NCBI RefSeq assembly: GCF_000315625.1 | Contig: NW_005434655.1 | Span: 529,089-593,088, forward strand | DNA length: 64,000 nucleotides | Reading direction: 5' to 3' | DNA from: Guillardia theta CCMP2712 | Taxonomy: Eukaryota > Protista > Cryptophyta | In this document: positions 3,063 through 61,950 of the stretch, in pieces | Layout: the number at the start of each line of letters is the position of its first letter | How positions within the stretch are numbered: position 1 is the first letter of the stretch | The notes under the pieces: generated by a model | What the model saw: only the letters and a program-made list of their open reading frames with translations | What the model was told of the DNA's origin: nothing | The model's database searches: none | Position numbers and translations under genes: made by a program

Positions 3063-5959
3063 TTGACGAGCCTTCCCCTCGATCCTCCTTCTCTCCGCTC
3101 TCCTCGCTGCTCTCCGGTCGTTCTCCGACCTTGTCGTCGCGTTTCCCAGCACTGGCCAAGCCTCCTGATCCTGCAGCTAACGCCCCCTCCTCGCTGCTGG
3201 TGTGCGGCCTGTCCGTCGACCATCAGCTACCATCGCGTCTTCGCTTACAAGCATCCTGTGCAGGAGCAGGGAAAGGCAGGAGAGCTCTCGAGGGTGGGGT
3301 GGTGTGAGGGGAAAGAAGGGGGTGCATCCTCCTCCCGACAAAGGATGTCGCTACGGACTCACCCCACCCCTGACAGACCCATCACCCCTACCCTCCTGGT
3401 CCCAGCACCTTACCCCCTCACTTCCCACATGCCACCACCCACCCACCCCTGCTCCTCCCCGGCCCCTTGCACCGCCCCTTTTCTCAATCGGAAAGATTCT
3501 CCAACCCCCACCCCCCACCCCCTCCGCTCACCCCTCCCTACCCCTTCTCCCTTCCATCGCTTTCCCCTTGTCCCTCCCTCCCCCCTCCCTCCGCCCCCTA
3601 CCTGCCCCCGCCCCCCCTACCGTGATGTCGTAGCCTCGGCTCTCCCCTGCCCGGTCTTGCCCTGGTCTTGTTCCCTGCCCTCGGAGGCTCCTCGCCCTCG
3701 ACCGGAGGCTCAGTATGCAGGCGTTTGCTGCCCTAGCGCGAGTCGCGTTTGCTTCGCCCTGAGGGAGGTGTCTTGCCGCTGCTGCCTCCTCCTCCGATGC
3801 TCCCAGCCGGCGTCTCAAGCTCCGTGCTTACCTTCTGCATGCCTGACGCCCTGCCTGCTTCGCCACAGCGCCAAGCGGAGGCCTTCCCTGGAGGCGTAGG
3901 GTCGCCTGCTTGTCGCGAGGGGCGGGGGTGTTTGGTTTGGTTCGAGATTCTAGCTTCCGCCTCCTGCAAAGGACATGCTCCCATGCGCGCGCGTGAGGCG
4001 AGGAGAAGGCACTGCTCCTCATGCTTCCTGCATGTCTGTCAGGTCAGGGCAAGAGGAAGCAGGATGCACCAGCAGCCACGGGACGAGGTCAGCCAAGGAT
4101 GGCTCGACGCCTGCGCGCGTATCGCACACTGAGAGCCACATGGCGGGGGCCACATGCTCCTGCTGCTCGTCGATGAGTGGGATGATGAAGCACATGCTTG
4201 CGCGCGGTCAGTCAGAGGCCTCAGTGCCATCATGCTCGGGCGAGTCGTCCCTTTCTCCGCAGGCTTCCAACCCTCTCCATGCCGACGCAAGCAGGAGCAC
4301 GTCGCCCCTCTCAGCGACATGCTTCCCCACATGTCTGTTCTCGCGCCATTCATACTTCTGATACCTCCAAGCAGCTGTCAGTGGGCGCTTCCATTTGCAG
4401 AGTGATCGCAGAGCAGGTGAGCATCTCACAAGAGACACAGGGTGTGAGGCTCATGACTTCATTCCGTTCTTCAATACAACTAGCATAGAATATCTTCCCC
4501 TGCCGATCACTCCCGCCGCCTCTCCTCCCCCCCTCCTCCAATGAAGCCTCTCCTGTCGTTTCTTGAGAGTCCCGGAGCCTTGATCCCTATTCCCCTTGCT
4601 TCCGCATCCCGAAGCAACAGCCGCCACTCTCTCCCGCATGTCAGTCAGACAAGCTGAGCCCGCAGGTCCTCGGGCTCAAGCGTCCAGCAATCCTAGACTT
4701 CAACTCAATCGTACACTATCCTTGCACTGTCCTTGCTCCCCTCGTCTCCGCTCCTGCTCTCTGCCTTTCCATCGACACCTGTTGTTTCCCTCGAAGAGGA
4801 TCACAAGCCCGGCACACTTCTCCCTTCCTCGCTGAAGCCTCTCATCATCTCTTCCGGTCATCCGGCACACATCACTTTCTCTCGCACTCCCGACCTCAAG
4901 CACTCCACGTCTCTCCATGCTATCGAGATGACCATGCGGCCTTGGCTGTCCGACATCGTCGTGCACATCCATGACCTGCCCCAAAGTACACGCTCCTGGG
5001 CTTCCTTGTATGTAGATCTCAAATGAAAAAATACTATCGCCTTTCTCCTTTCCCCTTCGCGCTCCCAACAATCACTCGACACTCATCCCAACCAAAACAG
5101 CTCCGACACACTCAAGCCTCTCCGCACTGCCTACCATGCGTCAGATATGACAGGAGCTGATCTACGTGCATCCGCAGGGTGTGGCTGCAGCTTCAGACGC
5201 TGCTCGCTCTCATACACGGCTGCTCACACTTCTCCTCTACCTCTAAACGCAAACAATTCTCCCCCGCTCCGAGCTTCACGCAACATGGGCATGAGCACAG
5301 AGCACATCAGAGGAGGAGGAAGGAGGGTGGAGGCTTGAGCAAGGCATGCAGAGAAGAGTCAGGCGCTCTGTGCTTGAGAGGCAAACAGCCCTCCCACATG
5401 TAGCAGCAGCAGCAGCAGCATCAGAGGAGCAGAGCATGCCAAGCAGCGAGTTGCAAGTTGCTGGATCCCCTGTGCAGAATTATGTTCCCCCGCTCTCCAC
5501 CCCTAGGGGTATATACCTACCCTACTAGAGGTGGTACACATAAAGCGTATGGCCTCACAAGTACGGGTACAGGTACAGGTACCACCCCCACGAGACCGAT
5601 GGGAGCCGTCTAGCCGAAATGTGCCTCCCTGTGGTCTCCCCGGGGCATATCACGAAAACTTGCCCCCGAGGGCTGCAGGGGTCAGGGGGTCAGACCTCTA
5701 GGGTTTTGCATTAGAGCCTCAGTCGAGACTTCGTAGACCTTATTCCCATTTTAGGGTTATGTCCATCTATTTCTCACCCCCACCTACTCTGACATGATGC
5801 CTCCGGCGCAATCAGGCACCCTTGCCATGACTCAGAGGAAGGGCGCTTAGGAAATGGAAGGGTCACCACCAGGTGGTGGTGACGGGGGAAGGGAAGGGGG
5901 TACTGGCATATCATTGTATGGGGGCCCGGCGAGACGGGGGGGGTGGAAGGCTGTAAGAA

Positions 5960-6170
5960 ACACCGGTGTGTTTGACTGATACACTGGTATATGGGGTAGG
6001 GTGAACCACCCGGACCCCGTCATGTGACCACTGGGGTAGGGACCGGTGTGTTCGATACCGAGTTCTCAGAGGTCGTGAAAGGGGTAGGGGGACACCGGTG
6101 TGTTTGACTGATAGACTGGTACATGGGGTAGGGTGGACCACCGACCCCATCATGTGACACCGGGGTACTG
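5960..6170. repeat. Imperfect direct repeat, ~133-bp period
   Basis: acaccggtgtgtttgactgata(c/g)actggta(t/c)atggggtagggtg...catgtgac at ~5960 and ~6093, with a partial third copy at ~6041. Confidence 0.85.
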
Positions 6171-6335
6171 GATAGTACCGGTATTTTTGATACCAAGTCC
6201 TGGTTATGAAGGGGGTAGCCGCTGTGGGCTTCGAGGGGTGGGTCATGGGGAGGGGTCCGAACGGAGGGTTTAAAGGGGGGTGGAGGGGTGGGGTAAAGTT
6301 CCAAAACGGAGAGTTGAAAGTTTGAAAGTTGATTT

Positions 6336-6522
6336 TGATTGGAAAATGATTGCAAAAGTATACGGTTACGACCGTTTCTGATACGTGCAACGGTACGAAA
6401 CGGGGAGTTTTGATTGGAAAATGATTATTGTTTCAAAAAGTTGATTGGAAAATGATTACTGCAAACTTTCGTTGATTGGAAAATGATTACTCCAAAAATT
6501 TGTTGATTGGAAATTGATGATT
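6336..6522. repeat. Five copies of TGATTGGAAA(A/T)TGAT (CCAAT on - strand), four at exact 31-bp spacing
   Basis: TGATTGG starts at 6336, 6411, 6442, 6473 and 6504. Confidence 0.9.
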
Positions 6523-7860
6523 GCCCGACGGTGACTGTACGGGCCCAGCCGACCGGCGGTCCGCGCGCCCGGCGGCCTGCCGGGCCCACCGGCGGTTATG
6601 TGACTGAGTCCGGCCACGCTGACGGTCGGGCCCGGCCCGGCCCGGGGCCCGCCGGGCTGGCCCGGGCGAGGCTGGCCTTCAAGTTACTCAAAGTGAAGTT
6701 AAACCAACGCCGGGCCTCAGCCGCTGAGCCGCTCGGAGCCCGCGCGGCACTGACTCCAGGGCCGGAGTCCCGGAGTCCGGGACTCGGACGCCCGGCCCGG
6801 CGGAGTCGCCGCGGACCGTGGCTCCGAGTCACTGAAAGCGAGCCTCTCCTCCGACCTTTCTGTAAGGCTCGAGTCTTACCCGTGGCACCGTCACGAGTCA
6901 GTCGGACCGTCTCGGTATCGGATCCCGGACGGCGGCTCCGGGAGCCGTCCGACGGGGAGTCCCCGGCCGCGGAGCCTTCCGGCGGGACCGGGCCGGGAGC
7001 CTCCGGCGAAGCCTCCGACTCCGGGCTCCGAGGTCCGACTCGTGACGTTCTCGCCGTGTGGCCCAGTGTGGCCCCGGCGGGTGTGCCGCGGTGCAGTGAC
7101 GGTGCGACCGTTCCGACAGGCACGGTCGGTCAGGGTCAAGCCTCCGGTCCTCGACTCTCCTGATGGTCCTTGTACTGATTCAAGTTTGACTAATTTTGAG
7201 TACTACCTAGAAGTTGAACTTGAACAGCCCGCCGCCGGAGTACGGTCGCCACTGCAACAAGGGACGCCCTACCCCCCGAGCCCCGCCTTGTGGGCCCGAA
7301 CGGTCGCAAAACGACTGGTGGGTCCTCAACTGAAAAGATGCACTTTCGGACGATGTGTCACATGGGAGGGTGGGTAGGGGGCTGCAACAAGGGACGGATC
7401 GCATCGGAATGGATTTCCGTGGGGGGCAATTTGTCTTCCTTCATTCTGTCAAAGCCAAAAATATTCGGTATCTCTATTGGGAATGATTCGAGAGTTCTGC
7501 CAATATTGACAAAGCGATTTGGTGACCTTGGTATTTCTGTTAGGACCTTTACCGAAATTGTACATTTGGTTCACCTCATTTTCCCGCCTCTAATTGCGAT
7601 CCCCACAGCAGCTCTCCCCTCCTTCTCCATCTGTCCGACTTGCTCGTTTCGTTTCTTCTCATCATATCTCTCTCTTTCTCCCTCTATATTCCTTGTACTG
7701 ATTCTCGCCTGCTCCATTCCCAGGGGTTCTGTCCTTCGAAGTTCTTGAAGTTGTCGAAATGACCTCTTACAGTCCGAATTAACAGACCCATCACGTGCTA
7801 ACTATCCCCATCTTTGAACCAGCAATATCTTGTATTGTCTATTGTATTCATCTTTCCTCG

Positions 7861-15812: not shown

Positions 15813-17372
15813 ATCGAGGTGGATGTGCAGGGGTAAAGAGGAGGATATGAGAAGTAGTGGGAGCGAGGAGGGAGAAGGAGGGTTCGAGGATGGAGGAATA
15901 TGAAGATCTAAACAACAATAGATGAGAGTGCATGTGGAATTTCGATGACGTGAATGCACAGGTGGCCCATCACGGAGACAGCTTTCGTGTGTTTGCTCAC
16001 AAGCGCCATCGACTATCCTGTTGTCTACTTGCAGGTTATGTTGTTGAATGATACTTTCCGCCTTTCTCATCACTCCTTCTCCTTCATCTCTCCCTCTCCC
16101 TCTCCCTCTCCCTCACTCCCTCATCTCATTCGGTTTTCCTTCTGCACTTTGCTCTGATCGAGATCTTTTGTTTCTATCTTCTCACCCTATCTGGCAGGGT
16201 AGCAACATTTCTCTGCTCCATACCTTGTTCAGTGACTGTAGGAGAATGTCGGGCGCACATGAAATATGCAGGTATCTATCTCCTCCTCCTCCTCCTCCTC
16301 CTCCTAACTCGTTGCTCATTCCTCGTTGCTCGTTCCTTTTCCTCCTCCTTCTCCCCCTCCTGCTCCTGTTTCCTGAACACAATCTGTTGCAGCCTTCCAA
16401 ATGCCGTCAGCATCGTCATCGCCCTCATGCTCTGTGCTGCTATCAAGCTCATTCTTACACTCTTCACCCTGGGGCTCAAGGTATTAAACAGCTTCCCCCT
16501 GCTCCATCTGTCTCCTCCTGCTCCATCTGTCTCCTCCTGCTCCATCTGTCTCCTCCTGCTCCATCTGTCTCCTCCTCACCTCCTCTCTCCTCCTCTTCTT
16601 TTCCTCTCTTACTCTGATACTTCCAGATACCCGGCGGAATCTTCGTGCCTTCCCTCACGATTGGTGTGTCGACTCGACCAATCGCCTCTATTCTCCTCCC
16701 CGCCCCCCCCCTCCCTCCTCCTCNNNNNNNNNNNNNNNNNNNNNNNNNNNNNNNNNNNNNNNNNNNNNNNNNNNNNNNNNNNNNNNNNNNNNNNNNNNNN
16801 NNNNNNNNNNNNNNNNNNNNNNNCTCAATTTATGGAACGAAGTCCCAACCTCGTCTTTCACACTGCTCCCATCGCCAGCGTCGTCGAGACTCGGTTCCTC
16901 TCCTCTTCCCTCCCTCCCTCCCTCCCTCCCTCCCTCCTTCCCTCCTTCCTTCCCTCCCTCCCTCCCTCCCTCCCTCCCTCCCTCCCTCCCCGCTTTAGTC
17001 CTCGTCCTCCTTTAATCACTCTCGTCCTCCTCTTTCTCTGCTCGCTTTCTCTCAATATCTCGGCAGGTCCGTGGCCTGGGGCTTCGCTACCTCCTGGTGA
17101 CGGAGGGGGGGAGGCTGGTCGGCATCATCAAGAAGAAGGACCTGCTGGAGCACATGGAGTACCATCGCAAGCTCACGTCAGCTCCTCCCTCCTCTCGCTC
17201 CTCTTCAAGATTCCCTTTCTATCCTCCTGCTGCATTGCTCCCAATTCCTTTCTCCTCCTGTCTCCTGTACCACTTTCTCCTCCTCTGTTCAACCAACATG
17301 CTCGCGATCTTCTCCTTCGCCCCTCAGAGTATCTCAAGTGACGGCGAGTGTTTGCAGGAAGCTGAGGACTGA
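13670..17372 (+). CDS. CLC chloride/proton exchanger (ClC-3/4/5/Gef1-like) with C-terminal CBS domain; interrupted by a gap
   Basis: [28 protein letters not shown]|[12 protein letters not shown], and CBS segment [23 protein letters not shown]. Gating and proton glutamates are both present. Confidence 0.93.
15764..15812. repeat. Intronic (GGT)n/(GAT)n microsatellite
   Basis: Direct reading. Confidence 0.95.
16501..16577. repeat. Intronic 19-bp minisatellite (GCTCCATCTGTCTCCTCCT) x4
   Basis: Direct reading. Confidence 0.9.
16724..16823. other. Assembly gap (100 N)
   Basis: Run of N inside the CLC gene. Confidence 1.
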
Positions 17373-19884: not shown

Positions 19885-20830
19885 CATCTTGACCGGGCCC
19901 GCCCCGCTCAGCCTGTCCGGCCCGGGTGGCCGCGGCCATGGCACTCACCACTGAAGGGTTCTGCACGTTTCAAATTTTTGTTTGAAGTTGTTGGCCTATT
20001 TTTCAAATATTAGAGTTTTTCCAGAGACCAAAGCGCACCCCTATTCATGGGGAGGTTCATTAGGTACCACCTACCCTATACTTCAACGTCTTTTTCTATT
20101 AGAAATAACCGGTGTGAAAATGATCCCACCCCTCCATGTTCAAGCTGAGATCCAAGATCTGACCCTCAATTCTTGTTACTCCCACCCCCCTGCCAATTTT
20201 GTGCCCCAAACTTAAATATATTTTATGATGCACTACCCCACCTGGGTGAAGTGGGGTTTCTACTCACGACTACCCATAGTAGGATTGCTGGTTACCCCCA
20301 CCTACAAAATCAACCAACATTTCTATTAGACTACCCCATCTTCGATAGCCAATACCCGGTTCATCAAAAAATCACACTCGCTTGTGGGTGTCCTTGCAAG
20401 CTGGTACCCCTGTCCATTCAATTTACAATGTTTTAAAAATTATAAAGCGAAGACGCTTCACCCGGTGGTATGCGATGCTTCTCAGGGAAAGCATACCGGT
20501 GGTTTAGAGTCGAATTCCTACGCTCATTTTTTAAAATTCCTTGTACAGTGTCAAACCCCCAACCCTTGGTGACCCCCCACCCTAGGAATCAGCTCCACCC
20601 CTCAGGCAATATGACTACCTCCAGGTTGTAGATGCATCTCAAACTACCCTACCCCCTTCCATCGTGCCTCTCAACCCCACCCCCACTCATCCCCGCCATT
20701 CTGTCTATCCCTACCACCCATGATGGTCGGATGTGCCATCACCCCACACTCATTACGATCTTGATGTACCCACCCCCTGCAAAACTTCGGCCGCTAACCC
20801 ACCCGTTTGGGACATCTTGGTGGACCCCTA
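19885..20830. promoter_or_regulatory. Intergenic motif island B: short GC module, TTTCAAA/TTTGAAGTT linker, TACCCC-rich tract
   Basis: ccgggcccgccccg...ccggcccggg at ~19893-19935, then repeated TACCC(C) up to the + strand gene start. Confidence 0.5.
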
Positions 20831-20858
20831 CCGTGAAACTTGCTACGCTCTCGCAGCC

Positions 20859-21683
20859 ATGGCGTGTCCTCTGCCTGGAGTGGGCTTTGCGCTTCTATTG
20901 CTTCTCCCCATCATGATCCCCATGGTGTACTCCGCTTCTACCCCGTCTCCGTCGTTTCCTCTGTCCTCCTCCTTTGTAACTGTATCATCTTCTTCCTTTT
21001 CATCCGTTTCCAACACCCAGTCTGGTTCCGATGTGCGGTCTTCGACTGCCACTATGGGTTTTGTTGCTTTCTCGCATGGTCTTCCTACCTTGGGACACAG
21101 CATGTGGGGAGAGGCAAAATGTATCAAAACAGCATCATGCAAAGTCAAAGCCAGCAGGCTTACGGTCGAGGGCAATTCTGGCTTGAGGAAGCTGAGAGCT
21201 GAATCGGCAATGAGTGCAACCGAGCCTGACGTCCTTGCAGAGGTAAGTCTGTATCTCAATGTCTTACCTATGTTTGTGCATCTTTTGCACTCACGATGCT
21301 GGATAGGTAAAGATCAGAGCTGAGAAGGCAAGATTCACCTCCAGAGCTACTAAGCTCCTGGGAAAACCTGTTCTTTCAGACTGGAAGGAGGGTGTACACT
21401 TCGTCAATGCTGACAAGGACTGCAAGTTTAACTTCATGGAGATGGTAGTTGTACGAGGCAAGTATGCACGAGTACAGATGGGCCCAAACGAAGATGGGAT
21501 GTTTGCTGTTGAAACAATGAATGGTGAACAACGATCCGGTTTTGGATGTGAATGTTGACATTTGTTCTGGTGACAGGTGAAATGGGCAGTTCGGGGGTTA
21601 GGAGGCTTGGACCAACAATTATTGGGCGAATAGTGGACATGTCCTATCTGGACGATGCCTTCAATTACTACGAGATAAGCTGA
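20859..21683 (+). CDS. Hypothetical protein with signal peptide and Ser-rich transit-like region, 3 exons
   Basis: Open reading after removing GT-AG introns 21243-21306 and ~21523-21576, ending DDAFNYYEIS*. No family recognised. Confidence 0.7.
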
Positions 21684-22745: not shown

Positions 22746-22949
22746 CATGCACAAACATGCAGAGCCATAGAGACATTGCATGGTACAGGGGCTCACGCAC
22801 ATGTCAGCTTACATTGCCATCAAGTCGTCGGCATCGGCGTCGCCCGCCTCACGTGCGGTGGATCGGGTGAAAAGGGAGTGGGGTGGGGGACGAGAGTCGA
22901 TGGGGTGGGTGTTCCAGGTTATTCGGACGGGTCATTTTCAGCCCTGAAG

Positions 22950-23500
22950 AGGTCATAACAAGGGGGTACGAGTTGCAAGTTGAGTTGAAACCACGATAGC
23001 TGGTAGACCACAATGATACTCCAGAAGTTCCATGATCGATCGAGAAGTTTGGAAAATGTTATGTTAAACTTTTAATATATTGAGAATATTTTCAATTTAC
23101 GAAATTATTTCAAGCTGCGCGTGTGAACGAAACTACCCCCACCCACATGAACAGGAATACCCCCAGCAAGTGCTAATCTGCGGGGTAGTTCCCCTCCATC
23201 CACCGGGTCCTGACGAAGATTTCCCCAGAACGAACTACGGGTAGTGATCATGAGAATGTCCTGAGACCTGGTCCTCTTGGATGACCCCTATTTTCGATAA
23301 TCTACCCCTACTTCAGCGTCAGTTGTGAGATCATCAAACTATGGTATCAAGGCCATCAATTTTACTATCAATACACAGGGAAATTTTATCTACTAACATA
23401 CCTTGAGAAAATTCAACCACAGATTATCACCCTTGAATGCAGAGCACCCCACCAAATCGGTTGACCACCCCAAATATACTACCCCTACCCCCTAGAATGC
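22950..23500. promoter_or_regulatory. Intergenic motif island C: TACCCC-rich tract, no obvious GC module
   Basis: CAAGTTGAGTTGAAA, an AT-rich stretch, then repeated CTACCCC/ATACCCC words. Confidence 0.4.
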
Positions 23501-36050: not shown

Positions 36051-36064
36051 GACTCTCCGATGGC

Positions 36065-38939: not shown

Positions 38940-39349
38940 GGCAGTAGCCCTGCAAGACGAAATCAGCACTCATCCAAAGAATTCCAACATCAAGTGTCTT
39001 CAAGAGCTCTCATGAATCCTACATCTAGTGTAAGGAGGCTTCAACTCATTGATTCAATACTTTGCATGTTTGATTTTGCTATGCACAATCGTTCTTGCAT
39101 GTTCGATGATTGATCTATCTCTGACTACCACCAGAAGCCGATGGATCAACCCGACGACAATGATTCTGAACACCTTCACGTCGAAGTCATCGAGGGCGAC
39201 CCTCGACTCTCAAGGCTATCTATCATCTTCTTCTCGCATCCTCTTCCTTGATCATAACATCGCGCCATGCTTCCAACTCCTCGTCGTCACTGCCATGGCT
39301 CCTCCTCTTCCCTAGTGTCACTGCCATGATGTCGCCTGCAGTGTCAGAC

Positions 39350-39850: not shown

Positions 39851-39880
39851 GTGCGCGGAAGATCGGATGATCGGATGTCT

Positions 39881-40524: not shown

Positions 40525-40570
40525 CCCCTTGTCTGAGCCCCAGCTGTCGGACCCTGCATGTTCTCCTCCT

Positions 40571-41011: not shown

Positions 41012-42065
41012 GGCGACACGCAACTGTGTAGGGCAGGGCCTTCGGAGCTTGTGGTGAGGTGTAGCAGCTGGCGGCGAGGAAGGAGGAAGGGGAGGGGAGG
41101 AGGAGGGAGGAAGGACAGCGGGATCATGGGTTGCTATTAGGAGGCAGCCAGGGAGAGCAGCTGCGGATGGCGGGGACGATGTTGTGGAAGGAGGGACGAC
41201 GGATAGAAATGTGGAGGGAGGGGAATCCTTTCCTCCGATTGGAGGAAAGTCCCTATACCCCACCCCGTAGGGTATACTGGTCTAGGGGGACAAATAAGGG
41301 TGGTAGACGAGAACTCTCCTCAAGGCATGATAGGTTTTCATTCCCAAGGCTATATAAGTGGTTTATTATCCAGTGCTCACGGACCATCGCCACGACTCAC
41401 GTGACCCCTCTAACTCGAGTAAAGCCACTGAAATCAGGTCTTTTGCCCTCATCATGGCATTGGAGCACGTCGCCCTAAAACACTTGTTACCAACAGCCTA
41501 GCCACATGGAGCCCACGTGTACGGAACAAGAGGAGTAGCAGTACCATTGTTGGAGTATCTGATCATGATGGGAGGAGAGAGTCACCTGACTTACTTAAAG
41601 TTATTGTTATAGGAAAGTACGAGTGGTACCCACTTGAAGAACTTTCTATGAGCTGCTTTACTCGAAGGTATGTCAGCAGTCACTCCCCAATACCACCACG
41701 GTAAAGTACGGTATACCCGTGACCCCCAAGTTCAGGGCCTGCCCCGTGATTTATTAGACCCGGAGGAGAGTTTTCGTCTACCACCCCTGCTTCCCTCAGA
41801 AAAACTTCTCATCCTCCGGGGTGGGGTGCATTTGGTGTTCCCCCACTCGGGGAAGGGTTCCCCCGCTGTTCTCCCTTGATCAGTCGCTCCTCCTCCTCTA
41901 ACAACATCGTCCCCGCCCTCGACACATCAACAAACCCTCTTGAAATTATCTCTGCCCCTAATCTACCCTGCGCCCTCCTCCCTTCACCTTCCTCCTTCCA
42001 AGCCGCCAGCTGCTACACCTCACCACAAGCTCCGAAGGCCCTGCCCTACACACTTGCGTATCGCC

Positions 42066-42506
42066 ATGGCGGCTCCTCCTCCTCCTCTCGCGCCTCCCCT
42101 CCCTGCAGTCACCATCGCCCCTCGTCCCAGGACCTGCTTCTCCTTGCATCGAGCTACGGACGTGCATCTCGACCGACGTCGGCTCGAGTCGTTGTTTCAT
42201 CTCCCGCAGCCGCAGGCAGCACAGGCTGTAGGCATCAGCCTCACGACCTTCAAGGCGAGCTGCCGACGGCTCGGCGTCAGGCGATGGCCGTACAAGAAGG
42301 CCGGCCGGCCGGGAGGAGAGGCGGAAGGGACTACAAGCTCCCCGGCCCCAGACGCGGAGGAGCAGGAGAGCAGACAACGACTGCTGGTGGGCAGCAGCAG
42401 CATGCGGGCGGACGAGCAGCCGGACATCGACCAAGGGTGGTTGAGCTGGTATCTCAACTGCACAGGAGACGATTGCTCCCCGTCGGTGTGTATCTGCTTC
42501 AAGTAG
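42066..42506 (+). CDS. RWP-RK domain transcription factor (intronless, right copy)
   Basis: LFHLPQPQAAQAVGISLTTFKASCRRLGVRRWPYKK. Confidence 0.9.
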   Translation: MAAPPPPLAPPLPAVTIAPRPRTCFSLHRATDVHLDRRRLESLFHLPQPQAAQAVGISLTTFKASCRRLGVRRWPYKKAGRPGGEAEGTTSSPAPDAEEQESRQRLLVGSSSMRADEQPDIDQGWLSWYLNCTGDDCSPSVCICFK

Positions 42507-42552
42507 AGGAGGAGAACATGCAGGGTCCGACAGCCAGGGCTCAGACAAGGGG

Positions 42553-45472
42553 TCAGATGGGATGGCCTAGGGCGAGCTGCGCTGCTTCGATGGCTGCTCG
42601 AGCCTCCTGCTTCTGCTCACCCGTCAGGCCCTCGGGCAGCGTCACGCCGCGTCATCCACCTGAGGCCTGGACAAGTGCATGGCTGAGCTCGGCCGCGTCC
42701 ACTCGGCGGTCTTGTACTGTAGGAGACAGAGAGCATGAGAGTGAGGGAGAGAAGGAGGGAGGGAGGGAGGGAGGGAGGGAGAGAGGAAGAGGGAGAGGAG
42801 ATCGAGAGAGGAGAAATAAACGACATCATCACCTCTGCGGTGTGCTGGTTGTCTCCGGCCTCTTGCAGGTCCCCATGAGCGTCAGGCAGAGGGCGACATC
42901 AACGGCTGCTCACCTCCTCTACCGTGATACACGTCCAGGCCGAGCTTCGATCGAAACGCAACGCTGCATACCTGCCATGCTCCTGTCAGCCCCTCCCGTC
43001 CGACGAGTCAGTGGGAGGGTCGGGCTCACGGGGTTGTGTGCCGACGGGTGGCTCAAAGTCAGAGCAGCGATGCGTCGCTCCACCTTGTCAGCCTGCGTCC
43101 TGCCGCTCGCTAGCATGGCAAGGGAGGTTCTATGCATGATGGCTGACTTCAATAGCCTGGAGCTTTGCAAGGGTCAGCAACCTCGGAGTCTTCCTTCCCC
43201 ATCGCCCTACCCTGTCAACTTTGTTCTTTCCTTCACTCTCAGCCGGCAGATCGTGTCCAGCGCATGAGCCTCGATGGTCCCGATGGCGGAGTAGCGATCC
43301 AATCGAGAGGTCAGCGTGCTTGAGAGCTTGTCTGGGGCAGGCTCAGCAGGCGAGCTGGGGGCTTGCAGGAGAGGGTCTGAAAGCTCCGAAGCCGTGTCTT
43401 GAAGGAGGTCTGAGGTGACGGGACGAGAGGTGGAGTTGTCTTTCTCCATGCAGAAGGTGCTGGCCTTGATGGCTTGTTGCATGTCTTGCTCAAGGGAGTC
43501 GTAGGAAAGAAGAAACTCATCCCCCTCTGCCGTCTTGTCGCTCAGCAGGCTGAGAGAGTTGGGGGGCATTCGAGCAGTCAGTAAGACCACGACTTGCGAG
43601 AACCACCACGACCCGTCTCTCGCCACCAAGAAGTCAATCACGTATTTCTTGGGGAGAAGCTTAGGGTATTTCTGCTTGCTGTTTCCTTCCTTGTCTCTGC
43701 GAAAGGGAAATACGTGTAGAGCAAAGTCTATCAAGTCTCGAAACTTCGCCTTCTGTTCGCTCCATGCTGAAGTCTGTACTCGATGAACAGTGGTGGCTCT
43801 TCCACTCGCTCGCGTCCCCTTGAGATTGGAACTCTCGCAAAAGAAGCCGTTCAAGGGGGAGCTGGGCTTTGCTACCTCGTTTGTGTTTCGTATGATAAAG
43901 TGAGGGTTTTCATGCTCTTTCCCGCACTCGAGAACGAAGCGATTGATACCGGCGTGCGACCCTTGCGGTCGGATGTACATCTGCCATAGCGTGAAACCAG
44001 ACCCCGAGCTGTCAAGAAGAGAAGTGCGGAGGGCCTCATCGTTTAGCAGCGGGCGAACATCACAGCCATTGCTGGCACTGGTGGATCGGCGAACCACATA
44101 CAAGGGTTCATTCTCCTGCGACGTTATCACCGTCAGGAGCAGACAGACAGCACATGCATGATGGCACGACCTTCAAGCGGTAGGGCTTCCTGACAGAGAG
44201 CTCTGCTATTCTCTTTCTCCGACGCCTGCTCAGCCATTCTGCTGCTGACTTCTTGTTGACGCTCGTGCGACAAACGAACCCATCCGAGTCCGTGTAGAAC
44301 CCCCACAAGCGAATCCCTCCGACGTTGGACATGAGGATGGAGTCGGGGATGGGAAGCTGCAGACGAGGTTCTAGCCGATACCCTCCATCTGATCCCTGCC
44401 TGTTATTATCGACGTTACAGATGGTAAAACACTTCCAGAATGCTGTTCCAGGCATCGGGCCCAACTTCTCTTGGTCTTCGGTGAAACGACCTTCACTGAA
44501 AACGATTGACTTCATCTCATTGCTCTTCTGATTCTCGTGTGAGTGACAGACCGCTTCATTGAGTTTCGCATATGCCGACAACTTCTTCTTCTTCTTTGCG
44601 GTGAAGGCTGTAAGAGAAGCTATGGTAGTGTCGAGTTGAGGACTAGGAGCAAATACGAGAGTCAAAAGAAGAGATAGCAAGCAGGTGATGACTTACGTTT
44701 GCTCATCGACGACTTTCTCAACGACTCTCTTTGAGTGATGGTCCTTCATGTCGATCTGAATATCACCAATGAAATCTTCACTCGCCTTGGTGACTGTAGA
44801 GCTCAACATCGGCCGCTCCCACCGCTTGGCCTTGGATTCATCGAGCGCAGAATCAAACGGTAGCATGGAGCCGTTTGTCATCACCATCCCCCCATCCTTT
44901 CTCTTGGTGGTCACATGCCGCGGGCTCTCCCTCTCTTCAGTTCCAAACCAGAGGCCCTGCTGCACCCAAGCACTGGGTCCACTCGTCTTGTACGTAGTGG
45001 CTTCCTTGGAGAGCTCGAGAGCTTTCTTGGCATCCCATTCTTTGATCTTTTCTTTCTCGACGTAGGGGATGGGAGGGTAGTTCTGATCCTTGACAATCAT
45101 CTGAATCGCTCGCTCGAGCACGCGGAGTTGTTTATCGTCGTCATTACCCAAAGCTTCGGTCAGCTGTGCTTGCAGGCGTGCTAGATGCTGTTTGTCCATC
45201 CCCAAGATCTGAAGTTGATTGAGCAACTTTCCAAGCTTCATGTTCTCCATGGAAGCTAATCTTGCCACGAGATTCCTGTCGTTCCCGTCCTCTTTGAACC
45301 TTGCTTCCCCAGATGCCGACTGGCCTCTCGGAGAGGTGGCAAGCGGACCTCGAGCACCTTCCTCAGCAGCCGCTGCCAGAAGTTTCGGAGGCAGTTGATT
45401 GCTGGACTGTTTGGACTGTTTGGAAGCCCCAAAGCCATCGGAGAGGTCAAGCTGTTTGGCGCTCTTAGACAT
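42553..45472 (-). CDS. Large hypothetical protein, multi-exon
   Basis: Consecutive long ORFs (259, 190 and 307 aa) separated by short GT-AG introns. Small 3' exons join in frame to ..AQLALGHPI*. No family recognised. Confidence 0.7.
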
Positions 45473-45823
45473 GGCCGAGCAAAGGTACTGTTGCAGCTGA
45501 GAGCTTGGGAGGAGGTCGAGCTAGTGGGCAACTTGACCGCTCAAGACCCTTCGCACGTGTCCATCCTCATCACAGCACACAATCAAGCGCCAGTCGCCGC
45601 CTCCATCAGCCTCAAGCAGCGACGCTTGCCGTATGTTTGCTGCTGCATTCAGTTGGGCCGCAAGCCTGGAGGGGTGGGTCCATGCAGGGAGTTTGACGGG
45701 TGGGACATCTTCGGGCCTACAACGGATTGGTACCTCCGGTCTACCAACATCCGCTCAATTAGACCCGATCGGCCGGGCCGCCGGGTAACCGGCCGGGCCA
45801 CCGGAGACAAACGTAGTGATGCG

Positions 45824-50461: not shown

Positions 50462-51560
50462 ATGGCACAACAAGAGTTCTCCCCATGCTCGGACTGTGGG
50501 ACGTTGCCTTGCAAGAGACCCAAGAGAGTGTTGGACGACTGCTGCTCGTGCTCGGGGGAAGTTTGTGGGGACCCAGCATGCCCTGCGATCGAGTTGATCA
50601 CTTGCGAAGCTTGCAACAGAGGAGACAACGAAATGCAGCTGATCCTGTGTGACGGCTGCGATCATGCATGCCACCTGGCTTGCATGGATCCGCCCGTAGG
50701 TTTTGTGCCGGAAACGTGGTTTTGCCGCCGGTGCTTATCAGCATCGTTGAAACTGCATGATTCCAGGGACCGGAGGATAGGAGGCCAAGGTGATTGCACA
50801 ATCATTCTTGACCCAGCGTCAACTATGACCCTGACTTTTGGTATTGAAGCACTTTGTAAATCCGTAAATGATTTCTACAGACAAGGTGATGCGATCGGGC
50901 GAATTCTGCTGCCGTTCTAAACTTGAGTGGTTGACGATGCTATCAGACATCTCCTGGCAATCAGGAAGTTTTCCACAGCCCTCAGAGATTTTCAAGAGCG
51001 CAATCATGAACATTAGCCACCATGATCACGAGTCGAGCCCCAGGGGGCTGAGTTGCAAGTGCAAGAGGAGTCGATGCATGAAGAAGTAAGCTGCTGCCAG
51101 CGGCTACAGGTTCACGAGGTAGACTCTGACTCCCCGGACCTTTACAGGTACTGCGAATGCTTTCAGAACAGCTCTGCCTGCACATCTAGATGCACGTGCA
51201 ATGACTGCGGGAACACCATCTCGGAGAGGATGCGGAAGCCTGGGACCTTCCAAGTCCGCGCTTCCTCCACCTCCCCGACCAACGCCCCAGAGCCCGATGT
51301 AGAGGTTGTGCATGTCGCACCCAAGACGTGAGGCCTTGCCGATGACGGTTTCTCTGGTGTGACTTGCTAGCAGGGTCAAGCCATCGAGCTACAGCAGGTG
51401 GAGGCTGGAGAATCAACTCAAGGAGAGGGATAGGTCGCCGCTGCCGCACGAGCTGCCAAGGGAGGTTCAGCTACTTGCAGCAGAGGCTTACACTCGGCAA
51501 CAAGCCTTGCAGCATCAGAGCCTCGGCGGCAGGATGTCGAATCGATCTTCTCTTCCTTGA
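50462..51560 (+). CDS. PHD finger + single CRC (tesmin/TSO1/LIN54 CXC) domain protein
   Basis: PHD CEACNRGDNEMQLILCDGCDHACHLACMDPP..WFCRRC and spliced CRC CKCKRSRCMKK|YCECFQNSSACTSRCTCNDCGN. Confidence 0.85.
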
Positions 51561-51589
51561 CCCACGGCCACTGTCAGACTCACTTGAAT

Positions 51590-52780
51590 GTCGACACTCA
51601 GTCACTGTGAAAGCCGCCAGTGCCCCCGAATTGAAAAGTTTCTGTCACAGCACTGTTAGCATGCAACACTCAGTGACTGATTTCGGAAGTTCTGGCAGCC
51701 GCTGAGCCGCTGAGCATCAGACCCTTGCCAAGTTGAAAGGCTTAGTTTAAGTTACCGTGACTCAGTGATCAGTGTAGTATTTAGTAGATAAAATCCTTCA
51801 GGTCACAAGTTTTCGGTCCGATCCCGCCGCCCACTGCGCTCTGACGACCTGGCAGGCGAGTCCGCCGTCAACTGACGGTTCCGATTCGGAAGAGCTGAGC
51901 CCCGCCGGGGCCGGGGCCCGGCGCCGCCACACTGCACTTTGCGGCCGGGCCGGCCCGGCCGGGGCCGGGCGGACTGCACGCGCCGTGACTAGGGCGCGCC
52001 GGGGCCGGGCCGCTGGCAGTGCCCAGCCGCCGCTCCCCGGGCCGCACGCGGAACTTCGGAAGTTCCGAATGGTTCGAGCCGCGCCCGGCCCGCCGGCGCC
52101 GAGTCGGAACTCGGAAGCCTTTCGGCCAATGAATCGTCACCGGGCCCACGCGCGGCCGCATGTCACATGGCCCGGCCCCGCTCAAGCCGCGTGACTCGGA
52201 ACTCTTGGCCGAAAGAAATGCACCTATTGCCCTCATCCCCGCTTTTACCTCCTTCAAAAGCTGGCGAAAAAACATTTGACCGGCAATTTGACCGGTAGGG
52301 GTGGGACGTTATTCCCATTGAAACATTGCCATCATTGGAGTCTGGAATCATCTGCAACCCATAAGATGACACCACCCCTAGTTCTCTCTGTCTTCTTGGG
52401 GTGTGATTCTCATTGGGGTGGTGCGGTGGAAGTCTGGAAGGTGTGTGGTAAAGAGAGGCTGCTGACATATAATCGAACCTTCTGGAGTATTCTAAGACCC
52501 TCCGTCCGATGGTTACTAGGGTACCCCACCCTATTCATTCTAGGGTTACCCCATACCACCCCAGTTGCAAATGATCAGAAAGTCTTCAAACCGCACCTCT
52601 CGATTTGCCGGGGGTATTAAAGCATCGGTCACCACCCCTACCCCCAATTGGCCGGGACTCTTTATTCCTAATGAATGATCACCCCTTCCTGGCATAGGTT
52701 TAGTACCCACTGAATGGGAACACTGGATTACTACCCCTGCCGATCACCTACCCTAACATACCCCCACCCCTGTCTCATCC
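51590..52780. promoter_or_regulatory. Intergenic motif island I: ACTCAGTGA/GC module (~51590-52200), then TACCCC-rich tract (~52370-52770)
   Basis: cactcagtcactg, cactcagtgactg, ccgtgactcagtga, caagttgaaa and ggccggcccggccgggg, then repeated TACCC(C). Confidence 0.55.
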
Positions 52781-53015
52781 TCTAGAGTCGTCCCTCTTCG
52801 TCCCTTCCAAAGTTCCATCCTGCCTCTATTGGTCAGCTTTGTCATTCTGCTTGCCCCTTCGCTTCGGTGATCTTGGTGACACGCTCTTCTTCAAAGCAAC
52901 CCTCAACCCCTCTGCTGTTGCAAAGTCAAAGGAAGCTGTTTCTTTTCAATTTTCCTACAGACTCAAGGGTTCCTGAGTCTCACTTGGTTTTTCGACCCTG
53001 TACATACTTTGCTTA

Positions 53016-54035: not shown

Positions 54036-54729
54036 GAAAGACAGATATGGTTGAGGGATAGTTAATCTTCGAACACGAAACGATATGTTAAAATCTCAAA
54101 AAATGTTCAAATCTCAAAAAATTATGTTCAAATCTGCTGCAATCTTGCGATTGTATCTCGCTTCCATTTTGTTCTTGTACAGCCTTGCAGATTAGAAATA
54201 AAACCATCAGCATTGAAATGTGTTGTATGCATCTAGCTTCAACTCTGAAAATGATTGACAAAACTTTCATTTTTGTTCAACCAAATGAATTCACCTAGAA
54301 ATTGAAGGGAATTCGTGAGGGAGAGATCAGCCAAGATAATTTGTCTGACCAACAAGAAAAAGTGTGCTACAATCATTCCCTTTGCACGTTGCAGCGACAA
54401 CACTAACAGCATGACCTAAACATCGAGATGGCAGCTTTCTCACAGTCCATTTAGCATTTCAATCGATTGCTGATTTGAATCTCAACCTTCAACCCTTATC
54501 GCATCCATCAAAGCATGTCTGTCTGCCTCTTCACCTCGCTCTACAACCAATTTTTCATCTCAACTAGTTTTTTAAAAAGACTACCACAGTGGTAGTCTTG
54601 TTAACTTGAGTAATATATTCTGTACAAATCATTTGTTCACACCAGTACAAACAAGAACCAAAAGGTGATAACAAAAAAGGTAACAATATAGTAAAACATG
54701 AACATGGCTGACAGACCAAAACAATTTCT

Positions 54730-54803
54730 CGCTCCCGGCAGGGCTCGAACCTGCGACCTAACGGTTAACAGCCGTTCGCTCTGACCGACTGAGCTACGGA
54801 AGC
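54730..54803 (-). tRNA. trnN-GTT: tRNA-Asn (anticodon GTT), intronless
   Basis: - strand reads GCTTCCGTAGCTCAGTCGGTCAGAGCGAACGGCTGTTAACCGTTAGGTCGCAGGTTCGAGCCCTGCCGGGAGCG. Full cloverleaf, A/B boxes, and TTTT shortly downstream. Confidence 0.97.
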
Positions 54804-55128
54804 ACGTCTTGTGCTCTGTAACCAGAGCTTATATCGAACCTCATCCCCACACTGACCCTGGGGGTTGTCCAGGTTGGTGAGTCAGGGAGTCATGGCGTAT
54901 GCAGGGAAGGGAAGGGAAGGGAGGGAGGGAGGAAGAGAAGGGAGAAGTAGGTAGGAGGGAGAGGAGGGTTGAGAACCAGAAAGGGAAAGCAAAAGCACCA
55001 GAAGAGGGAGAAAACGAGAGAGCAAGTGGGCAAGCACGGGATAGACTGTGCTTGAGCGATCGTTAGTAAGGAACAAGAATACTGCATAACTCGAATGACA
55101 TTGTAATGCTCAACAGATTTGATCCACG

Positions 55129-57204: not shown

Positions 57205-60200
57205 CTACACTTCTTCGCTGCTCGAATCCAGCAGCCGACCGACCACGAACTTGTGCATAGACATGGCAAGCTCCTTCCACTCGGAGCTGCTACCCGAGTA
57301 CGAGGAGGAGGAGGCGGCAGCCACTCCCACCTGAGCAGCGGAGTCAAGAAGGAGCGGAGACGAGAGACAAGATAAAGCATGCTATGAGAGAGTCAACAAG
57401 CATGAAGGGGAAGAGAGGGGGAGGGAGAAGGAAGAAGATGGAGGAGAAGTGGGGAGGAAGAGGAGAAGAAGCAAGGATGTGTAGTGGTCAACACCTCCGT
57501 TGGAATCTCCAATGGAAGACTCTCGTGCTGATGACTTGCAAGGGAACACGCAGGCTGATCGTTCATGTGACTAGCCGACGAACACATACCCCCTCCTCCT
57601 CCCCTTCCCTCCCCTTCCCTCCCCTTCCCTCCCCTTCCCTCCCCTTCCCTCCCCTTCCCTCCCCTTCCCTCCCCTTCCCTTCCCTTACTCCCTGCCTGTC
57701 CTCTGCCCTCCCATTCCTCCCCTGACTCCTATCCACACCTGCATCATCACTTGAAACATTCTGTTGGGTCCCGCAAATCCTTGAGTCCCCTCGTCATCAA
57801 TCTAACGCGCCAGCATCAGAAGCGAAGCAGTAGAGCGAAGCAGAGGAGGAAAAGGAGGAGGAAAAGGAGGGGAGAGGAGGGTAGGGGAGCGGAGCGGAGG
57901 TAAATGACAAGATCACAATGATTTTCTCACCGCCGCAGTAGAGAAACGAGTCGCAGGGGTGGAGGGCGATGGTGTTGATAGGACAGGGCAAAGAGATGGC
58001 GGCTAAGGAAGAACCTGAAGGAGACAACAATCAGGAGAGGGACGAAGAAGATCGAGAAAGAGAAATACGGAGAAGCAAGAAAAAGTTGAATATGCAAGGA
58101 AACAGCTGCACGCATTTAGAGGCAGAGGCAGAGAAAGCGGCAGCGGCAGCGGCAGGAGGGAGCGGGGAGGTTGCATTCCTGCCCGACATCTCAAAACCTA
58201 CCAGTGGGGATATGGAAAATCCTGACAGTCTTATCGAGAGAGGAGGAGCACACGCGAGCTTCGCATCCTCCTGCCCCGACCACCACTGAAGTGACGGGCA
58301 ACGTGTGCTGTGACCAGGTGACGGAAGGAGACGGGAGAGCGGAGGAGACGGCAGAGTAGTCCAGGAGGTTACCCATGCTCCATGCACGTACCTGGTGCTT
58401 GTTACCAGTCCTCCTCCTCCTCCACCACCACCACTGATCCTTGTTCCCCTGCTTGTCGTGCATGCCGTCGCTTGCGTGGTTGGAGTAGCGGTTTTCGCTG
58501 CCTCCTTCGTTTCCTAGTATTTTATTGAGGCGGGTTTGTAGGCTTTATCCTCGTCCTCCTTTGTTTGCTCCGGTTTGCCTTTCTTTTTCAGTCAATACAG
58601 TCTGATTTTCCTAAATCGCGAAACTTTCATCATTGTGGGCTGCACTGCGTCATCACCATGGAATAATATGTGTAGCCACGGTTACAAGAGACTCAGTCGT
58701 TGCATCATGTCATGTGCTGCCTGGAAAATGACATTTAATGATATCTGTAAGATTTCATTCATATTTAGTATCATTGAAGGCCTGAATTCTCCATCACCCC
58801 AAATACAGTCACCGTACCCTGAGAACTGCAGTGAGTAGCCTTGTTGAAGATTCCCGCAGGCAGACTCTCCAGCTTGTTGTTGTAAAGATTTATCTGCACA
58901 AGCTGGCTCGAGAGCTCGTCGAACACCCCTGCAGGCAGACTCTCCAGCTTGTGTCGGAAAGAAATAGCCAAATCAAGATTGAGAGCCTGTCGAAGATCCC
59001 TGCAGCAGACTCTCCAGCTTGTTGTTGGAAAGAAATAGCCAAATCAAGNNNNNNNNNNNNNNNNNNNNNNNNNNNNNNNNNNNNNNNNNNNNNNNNNNNN
59101 NNNNNNNNNNNNNNNNNNNNNNNNNNNNNNNNNNNNNNNNNNNNNNNNTACCCCCCTCCGCCCTCCTCCCCACCCCCTTCCCCTTCCCCTTCCTACCCTT
59201 CCCCTTCCTCAAATGTTCCATCCATCCTCTTTCTCTCCGACCCACCCTCCCCTTCCCCCCTCCCGTCCTCGACATCGCCGACGATCCCATTGCCCCTCCT
59301 CTTCTCTCTGTATACCAGAGCGTCCTCAGAGGCAGTGAGGATGAACGAACTGTCGTCAGTGAAGGCGATCGAAGTGACTGCATCGATGTCAGTCGACACT
59401 CTTTCTGCTCCTCTCATGTTGACTGCTGTCAAATTCTTCCGCAATGATGCCCTCTCCGCTCTGCCCTGCCCTGCCCTGCCCTGCCCTGCCCTGCCCTGCC
59501 CTGCCCTGCCCTGCCCTGCCCTTCTTTCTCTCCCTCGTCTCGCCACTGTCTTCAGTTCGTCTCCTTTCCTCTTCCTCTCTCAAAGCAGTTTCACCTGATC
59601 TGTAATGAGCCTCCCACGTTCGAATCAGAGCTCCTCCGCACACCTGTAAACTTCCTTCACAACTCTCCTCCTCCTCCTCCCTTGTCTCCCATCCCACCAT
59701 TCCCCTCTCCCCACCCTGTTCTCTCCCTTCCTCCCCTTCTTCCCCCTCTTCCTCGTCCTCTGCACAGCATGAAATAAAACTTTCCTCCCACAAGTAAACT
59801 CTTCCAGTCTCGGCTCCAGCGAGAATGTAGCTTCCTGCTGCACATCAGGTACCCGTGAAAAGATAAAAGAACGCTCCTCACCGTCGGCATTGGCTGCGAT
59901 CGAGCAAACCTTCTCGGGAAGAGACATCTTCGCGTGCGGCTGCAGAATCGGAAGGAGCAGAGGGGGCAGGAGTGGGAGGGAGGAATGGAAATCAGTGCCA
60001 GCGGCCAACTAAGAAAGAGACAGAACACAAGTGATAGAGGAGAAAGTTGTAGAGAAGGAGGACTGGAAGAAACAATGGAGCGAAACTTCTAGCAGGAGGA
60101 GGAAGAAGGAGAAAGGAGGAGAAAGGAGGAGACACTTAAGGTAATAAGAGGCTTCCAGGTGAAGAGACCAAACTGACGAGCAATGAGACAGGAAATGCAA

Positions 60201-60520
60201 CAAGAGGATCAGGACGAGAAGGGAGCAGGACGAGGAGAGCAGCAGCATCAGCAGCAGCAGCAGCAGCAGCAGCAAGCAGCAGCAAGCAGGCAGGAAAAGA
60301 ATACCTGGTCCTTTCTCCAGTTGAAGACATGCAACGTTGGTTTGTTTGCAAGGGGCACAGCAAAGAAATCCCTTCCCACAGTAGCTACCGCATCCTTGGA
60401 AGCAGGAGACGCTGGACGATAGGACACGATCGTCGTTGCCGTGATAAGCTCCCACATGTTCATGGTAGAATCATCCCCTCCTCCACTCAGCACAACCTCC
60501 TGCAGTGCTGGTAACGGCAT
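57205..60520 (-). CDS. WDR18: WD40 protein WDR18/Ipi3 (Rix1 complex); multi-exon, spans a gap
   Basis: LHVFNWRKDQ, SYILAGAETGRVYLWE, LIRTWEAHYR, SIAFTDDSSFILTASEDAL and WSQHTLPVTSVVVGAGGCEARVCSSSLDKTVRIF. Confidence 0.88.
57600..57685. repeat. Intronic (CCCCTTCCCT)n tract
   Basis: Direct reading. Confidence 0.9.
58771..59048 (-). pseudogene. Leucine-rich-repeat fragment (about three ~72-bp units, frameshifted) inside a WDR18 intron
   Basis: LFLSNNKLESL, HKLESLPAGVFDELSSQ and INLYNNKLESLPAGIFNK. Tandem gcagactctccagcttgt units abut the gap. Confidence 0.75.
59049..59148. other. Assembly gap (100 N)
   Basis: Run of N. Confidence 1.
59462..59521. repeat. Intronic (TGCCC)n pentamer repeat
   Basis: Direct reading. 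Confidence 0.95.
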
Positions 60521-60989
60521 CCTCCTTGGACCTTGCCGGCCTCTACCAGCCAAGGGATAGGATCCTTGTGGAGGGCAGGAGGGAGGGGGGAGGGGGGGCT
60601 AGGATGGAGTTCCAACTTGATGTTTCTTGTCTTCTTTGGGCAGATGACTCTCAATGTTCCGTTGTTACCTTGCTACTGGTTTGTGATCTAGTCGACGTGA
60701 AAATTCTGCTGATTTTGCGGATTCTTCCTGAAGAGCAAATTCAGCAGATTTTTCATATTTCCTCGTCCTCGTCCTCGTCCTCCTCGTCCTCGTCCTTCTC
60801 CTCGTGCTCCTCGTGCTCCCCCCCCCCCCCCCCTCCTCCTCCTCAGCTTCGATTAAGTCTAGTCCATCCCTTCATGCTCCTTTCCTCTTTCGCTCCTCTC
60901 CTCCCTCCCTTCATCCTTCAGACATTTTCCCACTGCATCCATTCGCACGTGAAAATCGATGAGCGGGGATGAGGGCTATACCTCTACTC

Positions 60990-61950
60990 GAAGACTCCGG
61001 GACTCTCGCCGCCGCCGGCGCCCCGGCGCCGAGCCGCCCTCCGAGGCTCGGCCGCCCGGCGGCCCGGCTCGGAGCCCCGGAGGCCGAGTCTTATAGCAAG
61101 TTCGGAACTGATGATCAGGCATTTACTCAAAATTAGTAGGGTTTACTAAAGTTAAGTCATCATGGCAGATAGCCGCGGCCTGAACTTGGAATGAGACTCG
61201 GAGGCTCCGACGCATCAGTGTAGTACCGGCCGGGCATCACTCCGACTGGCAGGCTGTGACCGCCGCCGACCATGACTGCACCCACGATGATGCGGCAGCG
61301 AAGGACAGGGAGGCCTTGGGCTGACGAAAGATCCTGGTGAACCGGATGCGTCACGTTTGCAAGTCGGATCAGAACCTGGTTTCGGATCAGAACCCCGCGC
61401 CGGGCCCGGCGCCGGGCCCGGGCCGGTGGCCGGGCTACACGGTGTTACTGCTAGTACACGCCGCCGACCGGGAGTCTTTCAAAGCATCGGAAGCCGGGCG
61501 GGCCTGGAAGTTTCCGCCCAACTACCCCCATTTGAAGACCCTTACCCCACCAATTTGTTCCCTGATCATTATCACCCTACAATAGTTAGTCAAATATACC
61601 CGTCTAGTAACAGATTAGAGTACCCCTACCCGTCAATAATATAGATCTGTTACAGGCCACCCCACCTCCAATTTCCCTAATTACGGCGTCGATTACCCCC
61701 ACCCCACATCAAAATCTTTGCACCCCCTCATTCTCTCGTTTGAATCACCACCCCACCCGTACACACATCCCTGACCCACCCTTACCTTGTGAAAAAGTTT
61801 GTACCCCACTTTTGAACATATAAAATACCCTCACTGATACCTCCACCCACCCGTGTCATCCATTTAGGACCCTACCATAGTTGGCCCTACCCCCGTTTAT
61901 CAAATGAAACCCTACCCCCAAGTCCCAACAGATATGTACCCCAACCCATA
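60990..61950. promoter_or_regulatory. Intergenic motif island J: GC module (~60995-61505), then TACCCC-rich tract (~61520-61945)
   Basis: cgccgggcccggcgccgggcccgggccgg and GAGTC/GACTC words, then dense TACCCC up to the + strand gene. Confidence 0.55.

Follow-up and report, generated by a model that had tools for sequence, protein, structure and literature searches.

Strand-coherent C-tracts and GC modules, two separate kinds of intergenic sequence in the nuclear genome of Guillardia theta

The spacers between genes in a 64-kb window of nuclear DNA from Guillardia theta CCMP2712 (the window being the whole stretch that was analysed), a member of the cryptophytes, which carry four genomes per cell, contain two kinds of mostly single-copy sequence: C-tracts, which are single-strand arrays of a C-rich heptamer on the 5′ side of genes, and GC modules, which are G+C-rich blocks without bias towards gene 5′ ends. 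An earlier interpretation of the letters of the window (the sequence-only reading) had described a series of intergenic islands, lettered A to J, as one polarised system in which a GC module is followed by an AT-rich linker, a TACCCC tract and a gene start. This first observation was largely right, whereas the single-system interpretation was not. The reading favoured here, to which a probability of about one half is given, is that tracts and modules are two independent kinds of intergenic cis-sequence, and that the tracts act as promoter-side or leader arrays.

The sequence examined comprised the window and 200 kb of contig C1 (together the 264-kb sample), with 22 additional loci of ~3.2 kb each around Ras-family exons; genome-wide work consisted of pattern counts and a repeat search over the assembly of 87,145,349 bp in 669 contigs. 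C-tracts were defined as at least four ACCCC words on the same strand with gaps of no more than 150 bp, yielding 31 tracts, 11 of them in the window and 20 on C1, and 22 GC modules were identified in the 264 kb. All three runs of N in the window (2499-3062, 16724-16823 and 59049-59148) lie outside the islands, and no statistic crosses them.

TACCCC occurs 46 times on the + strand and 30 times on the - strand of the window, relative to approximately 18 per strand estimated from base composition. ACCCC/GGGGT words number 0-1 per 250-bp bin in gene bodies and 4-8 in tracts, on a single strand only, which bears out the earlier claims that the tracts are real and that their words are scarce in genes. 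Each tract is an array of 150-900 bp holding 5-17 copies of C-Y-A-C-C-C-Y with a median spacing of 31.5 bp; tracts occur about once per 8-9 kb in the 264-kb sample, and their features recur on contig C1 as in the window. Within the 31 tracts, sense and antisense words stand at 235:15, so that 94% lie on a single strand. Relative to a first-order Markov model of the tracts themselves, TACCCC (96 copies versus 24.0 +/- 4.6 expected, z 15.6) and CTACCC (z 16.8) are strongly over-represented, and GACCCC and AACCCC are at expectation. The base preceding ACCCC is T in 96 cases, C in 102, G in 18 and A in 19, and C is favoured after ACCC (0.61), giving the consensus C-Y-A-C-C-C-[C/T]. A triple-motif pattern matched the window seven times and 100 shuffles not at all; the motif therefore exceeds local composition by three measures (TACCCC, CTACCC and the triple pattern), and enrichment of the words over a composition-matched background holds for both the tracts and, as shown below, the modules. 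ACCCTA is enriched 24.6-fold in tracts yet is a minority form (30/333 ACCC sites).

The tracts are skewed in composition (C 36%, G 15%) and CpG-poor, with an observed/expected (o/e) CpG ratio of 0.46. This skew, together with the resemblance of module cores to decayed GGCCC/CCGGG pentamer runs, would be expected if both features were neutral by-products of drift, slippage or biased repair in spacers tolerating C-/G-run and (GGCCC)n-like DNA. About half of the tracts could also form four-run structures: four C-runs with loops of up to 7 nt are present in 11/23 tracts, and with loops of up to 12 nt in 17/23, counts that carry no shuffle control. A neutral origin is nevertheless considered unlikely, given that the base before ACCCC is specific (T/C 198 versus A/G 37), that CCCCCC is under-represented (51 versus 109 expected), that no tandem structure was found inside tracts except in island A, and that the tracts lie on the 5′ side of genes.

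The position of tracts relative to genes was assessed using gene strands called with our own three-periodic Markov model, a crude model which assigned the correct strand and frame to 17/17 Pfam-anchored Ras exons and, at the working threshold, gave 35 real segments versus 21 false ones on the reversed window. A codon-usage gene caller was dropped because known genes were missed, and tests using the nearest long open reading frame (ORF) were dropped as too noisy (16 versus 14 and alike). Three independent tests, all on small samples and our own gene-strand calls, placed the tracts on the 5′ side of genes. Among strand-switch spacers, tracts were present in 4/17 divergent and 0/16 convergent cases (p 0.10, Markov-model strands). 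GC skew, which is +0.059 on the sense strand of confident coding sequence, diverges in the flanks of 24/30 tracts (mean +0.133, p 0.014; random positions +0.004). For Pfam-anchored Ras-family genes, a tract was found in 8/16 5′ flanks versus 0/11 3′ flanks (p 0.008). Since the motifs exceed composition and the tracts lie on the 5′ side, clustered cis-sites are a fair reading of them, and this part of the sequence-only reading may stand for the tracts, but not as one system with the modules.

The C-strand tends to point at the nearest gene. Downstream segments are on the same strand in 12 cases and on the opposite strand in 5, a YAG-ATG-ORF signal lies downstream of nine tracts versus three in the mirror orientation, and genome-wide a coding-sense word lies at +470-500 from a tract word in 838 cases versus 766 in the opposite sense. 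The well-supported conforming tracts are those of islands C and E and those at C1 80404 and C1 197691, which adjoin ORFs of 979 and 2342 codons, respectively. C-tract C (23135-23487, + strand) is upstream of a TPR-DnaJ gene (Pfam match over 24399-25976); the island has an AT-rich centre at 23000-23120 and no GC module, and a short G-word group to its left (22880-22970, - strand) mirrors the right tract. C-tract E (35317-35580, - strand) is upstream of the - strand importin gene (ATG ~34866), the ORF of which is 100% identical to GUITHDRAFT_56057 of G. theta CCMP2712. AT content rises just upstream of tracts, in agreement with the AT-rich stretch described before them, although the AT linker of island A proved to be a repeat. 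TATA-like words are uninformative because they are enriched on both sides of the tracts.

Several observations weigh against a promoter-side or leader role of the tracts. No single test gave a significant orientation of tracts towards the nearest gene, so that of the polarity claimed relative to gene starts the 5′ location of tracts is retained, their orientation is a tendency only, and the modules are unbiased. In the Ras 5′ flanks, two tracts run sense versus six antisense, all at least 0.9 kb from the exon; these tracts possibly belong to neighbour genes. The tracts of island D and at C1 183193 point at gene 3′ ends. No avoidance of ATG or AG was found in tracts beyond their low G content, and gene strands were derived from our own crude models, among which the Markov model performs weakly on many of the window's genes. 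A Pfam search of ten ORFs adjoining tracts A, B, I and J gave no match, and the coding signal there is weak in the Markov model; the genes flanked by these tracts may form a lineage-specific or low-complexity class, or their calls may be wrong.

Mature mRNA lacks the tracts. In island B, the word share of linker and tract (19960-20858) is 0.00 in each of ten RNA-type contig runs, of which nine contain 43-59% of the surrounding 5.9 kb and the tenth (run X17) 20%, and 1.00 in a 2011 run that is taken to be genomic DNA. RNA contigs and depth were also examined over 34300-40299, the importin region, where the depth in runs X8 and X9 is zero over both tract E and module E, although importin exons reach 560. 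Absence from mRNA does not imply that the tracts are untranscribed, because trans-splicing could discard them as outrons: in G. theta, at least 21% of mRNAs receive a 17-nt leader by trans-splicing, as a rule 0-10 nt upstream of the ATG (PMC5619915).

An alternative in which the motif acts at the RNA level was therefore considered, namely that transcription starts in the AT-rich segment and the tract is a C-rich outron removed by trans-splicing next to the ATG; the motif would then be an outron or trans-splicing signal. The frequency of trans-splicing and the usual position of its acceptor agree with this, and the fact that the words lie almost entirely on one strand without showing tandem structure points to a strand-specific process, which leaves room for the outron reading. 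YAG is present 1-2 nt before an ATG at the tract end in B and C and ~40 nt before the named ATG in J, in line with the excess of YAG-ATG-ORF signals downstream of tracts. Importin RNA contigs end at 34895 (run X6) or 34835 (run X8). The 34895 end, that of the longest contig, is a CAG ~28 nt before the ATG, and an end at 34894-34895 fits a spliced-leader acceptor, although the contig bears no leader letters. Low-depth RNA pieces upstream of importin (34996-35173 in X8, 35147-35430 in X6) would fit this alternative, but could also be rare upstream starts or DNA carry-over. Among the RNA reads of 34300-40299 no spliced-leader-bearing read was seen, the spliced-leader gene sequence was not found in the DNA examined, the coding-word proxy is close to even, and tracts such as D have the reverse orientation. 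The content of AG and ATG is no lower than composition predicts, so that nothing marks the tracts specifically as leaders. An RNA-level role is regarded as rather unlikely.

The GC modules are 50-600-bp blocks of 70.6% G+C that occur at about one per 12 kb (22 in 264 kb). GGCCCGG/CCGGGCC is present in 20/22 modules and is enriched 49-fold, and ACCGTAC and CCGGAGTC are each present in 10/22. Among the words listed for these blocks by the sequence-only reading, ACTCAGTGA (21.7-fold, p 1e-9) and CCGTGAC (9.9-fold) are clearly enriched near modules, and TGAGTC (1.9-fold) and AACTTGAA (3.8-fold, 5 cases) only weakly. The palindromic character was upheld, with 58 short inverted repeats in modules versus 9.3 +/- 4.1 in shuffles (six times commoner). 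Whole modules fold better than their shuffles only sometimes (z-scores of -1.54 for I, -4.72 for D and -2.17 for E). CpG o/e is 1.00 in modules and 0.73 in the rest of the sequence, relative to 0.46 in tracts, a mild contrast. Modules are not placed as vertebrate-type CpG islands at gene starts would be: the GC-skew test gave no 5′ bias (11/22), 12 module flanks face a gene 5′ end versus seven facing a 3′ end, which is no 5′ bias either, and modules occur in 4/17 divergent versus 2/16 convergent strand-switch spacers. Rfam and tRNA scans of the window identified no known RNA gene in any island; the sole Rfam/ARAGORN match in the window, a tRNA-Asn (GTT) at 54729-54804 (- strand), is outside all islands.

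A module lies within 1 kb of 12/31 tracts, where uniform random placement gives 6.0 (p 0.013). This null is generous because tracts and modules are both confined to spacers, and the roughly twofold co-occurrence probably reflects this shared location. The sequence-only reading had made of the two a single polarised composite, in which GC module, AT linker, C-tract and gene start follow one another, as a possible chromatin boundary, replication origin, unmodified domain or super-promoter. The order is present in islands E, I, J and B (the last with a mini module), across the 264-kb sample the module lies 5′ of the C-strand nine times and 3′ of it three times, and the AT rise just upstream of tracts would fit a linker. 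Genome-wide, however, CCCGGG lies 300-330 bp upstream of CTACCCC in 270 matches and downstream in 299 (reversed-pattern controls 157 and 114), 19/31 tracts have no module within 1 kb, and modules have no 5′ bias. Within the window itself, island D runs in the opposite orientation, a module is missing from C, the spacer of a duplication accounts for G and a repeat end is contained in A, and the ATGs of B, I and J, on which the order was read, are without Pfam support and show a weak coding signal. A fixed-order polarised system is not sustained by these counts and is held to be quite improbable; as only 12/31 tracts have a module nearby, the genome-wide counts are similar on both sides and modules show no 5′ bias, tracts and modules are independent neighbours with no fixed order and not one composite unit.

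A further alternative derives the islands from mobile elements, as decayed copies or as insertions. Its best case is position 6296-6527, the 'AT linker' of island A (+ strand), which matches the genome 38 times (at least 38 copies) with identities of 76-100%; roughly two dozen matches reach 93-100%, and many are arranged as inverted pairs 0.8-3 kb apart. This segment forms one end of a dispersed repeat, carries five subterminal TTGATTGGAAAATGATT units spaced at 31 bp, and looks like the end of a mobile or foldback-/MITE-type (miniature inverted-repeat transposable element) element; its left arm was not found in the window. C-tract A (5506-6290, - strand; GGGGTA words on the + strand), which includes a 79-nt tandem duplication, may be repeat-internal because it lies on the inner side of the repeat end. 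Among the matches listed, a few tract-bearing sequences are identical at two loci, but nearly all of the 100 genome-wide matches listed for each pattern differ in sequence. Module I and tract J have self matches only in the 87-Mb genome. An all-against-all alignment of 23 tracts and 22 modules, and their alignment to the other 330 kb, gave no matches save 18-45 nt of GGCCC-type low complexity, confirming that the islands do not align with one another. Regarding terminal inverted repeats or target-site duplications around islands, no arm pair was found around island A and the only large inverted pair in the window is the gene-fragment duplication described below; 6296-6527 is the single exception to the lack of a dispersed family with alignable copies. 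Most islands are thus not a transposon family, as had been claimed, given the self-only matches of I and J and the lack of cross-alignments, and a mobile origin for the islands in general is regarded as very improbable.

Island G (41111-41966), which has few tract words, occupies the 856 bp that separate the two arms of an inverted duplication (39882-41110 and 41967-43219; arms of 1.2 kb, 97-99% complementary). In this duplication, the 3′ portion of a - strand gene with high expression is present twice. Because RNA contigs on the left arm continue into 43212-43241 on the - strand, the transcribed gene is that of the right arm. An odd RNA junction from 39930 to 43212 (other strand), considered as an inversion or as trans-splicing, is explained by the inverted duplication, which could itself be an assembly artefact. 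The weak tract F (39371-39676, + strand, 5 words) is directly left of the left arm.

Elsewhere in the window, GC module A (6541-7074) contains 42 module words and 33-37 CpG per 250 bp. In island B, a mini GC word group (19893-19925) precedes C-tract B (20037-20940, + strand), the longest tract, with 17 ACCCC words. GC module D (26130-26469) follows directly after the 3′ end of the TPR-DnaJ gene and gave the strongest of the fold z-scores above; C-tract D (26819-27393, - strand) has the reverse orientation, being G-rich on the strand of both flanking + genes. Module E, made up of GC, GTCAC and ACTCAGTGA words, extends over 35734-35945. A mini GC module is located at 45655-45801, and a GTCAC/ACTCAGTGA word block (51560-51800) lies to the left of GC module I (51905-52174), which is followed by C-tract I (52374-52906, + strand). 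GC module J (60997-61500) is followed by the single-copy C-tract J (61523-61938, + strand). Two further C-tracts, at 644-848 and 3361-3540 (both + strand), lie outside the range covered by the sequence-only reading. The 56-nt C-tract stretches at 128-183 (- strand) and 644-699 (+ strand) are inverted copies with one base different, a hint that a further inverted duplication may lie near the beginning of the window.

The assembly gap at 59049-59148 is immediately followed by a TACCCC word and a C-rich run (59149-59210); this may be a tract cut by the gap, and it was excluded from the tract set. A 71-bp tandem repeat of three copies (58832-59048) runs into the same gap from the left. A perfect (CCTGCCT)x15 microsatellite is present at 31332-31437, close to the 3′ end of the importin gene. 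The gene at 36775-38969 (- strand) has a PH domain, a voltage-gated-like ion-transport domain and an EF-hand pair, and was seen at low depth in one run only. Introns in the window are short (GT..AG, 52-75 nt).

On the favoured reading of two independent kinds of cis-sequence, each C-tract would gather sites for a sequence-specific factor, with about one gene in three being served in this way, and some of its length may be transcribed as an outron and then lost through spliced-leader addition. The GC modules would be CpG-replete, palindrome-rich spacer blocks placed regardless of gene orientation, with GTCAC, ACTCAGTGA, ACCGTAC and CCGGAGTC as the words around them.

Several known systems resemble these sequences in part. 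Plant telo-boxes (AAACCCTA) and site II motifs are likewise characterised by a short C-rich, telomere-type-related word enriched on the gene start side, and plant telo-boxes show orientation bias. The telo-box core is not the tract motif, the tract consensus being C-Y-A-C-C-C-[C/T], and plant telo-boxes occur in one or a few copies, whereas the G. theta heptamer C-Y-A-C-C-C-Y is present in 5-17 copies over hundreds of bp. The telo-box/site II systems also have TCP and TRB-type binding proteins, whereas the G. theta tracts are known here from sequence alone. Vertebrate CACCC/GT boxes with CpG islands (Sp/KLF sites) likewise combine CACCC-type words with a GC-rich block in which CpG is at expectation. 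Unlike the genomes with vertebrate CpG islands, the bulk of G. theta DNA is only mildly CpG-poor and the modules are without 5′ bias; unlike CACCC/GT boxes, the tracts are CpG-poor (0.46) and hold 94% of their words on a single strand. Outrons and polypyrimidine tracts of kinetoplastids and nematodes, and of G. theta itself (PMC5619915), similarly have a pyrimidine-rich sense strand before the acceptor and ATG and are absent from mature mRNA, but described acceptor tracts are tens of nt long, whereas the arrays here span hundreds of bp, use a specific heptamer and are known from DNA. Origin G-rich repeated elements and G-quadruplexes of vertebrates share oriented G-run clusters near GC-rich islands (compare the 11/23 tracts with short-loop runs), but the distance of 20-80 bp between most tract words is too great for compact quadruplexes. 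Homotypic clusters of transcription factor sites also present many copies of a short motif within a few hundred bp beside genes, but usually mix orientations, whereas 235/250 tract words are on one strand. Metagenome matches to the triple-motif pattern were poly-C low complexity unlike the tracts in the two contigs inspected of 120, and no cross-species inference is drawn from them.

No published description of the tracts or modules was found in the literature on G. theta or cryptophyte promoters, motifs, transcription start sites or TACCCC, and, as far as the searches reach, no publication deals with the architecture of nuclear promoters or leaders in cryptophytes. The correction of the single-system interpretation matters in that the composite order does not hold across the genome, and certain islands turn out to be the end of a repeat or the spacer of a duplication. 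A heptamer found on the start side of about one gene in three, and nearly always on one strand, provides a handle for 5′ gene models and can be used beside spliced-leader reads and the histone-mark maps that exist for this strain (bioRxiv 10.1101/2025.03.17.643675), and it is a possible building block for expression tools, which the alga lacks. More tentatively, the C-tract may be a strand-specific signal that is read in the course of transcription or afterwards, either an outron element marking spliced-leader genes or a code that sets promoter direction; if true, it would be a cryptophyte cis-code for trans-splicing or promoter polarity, undescribed in any lineage.

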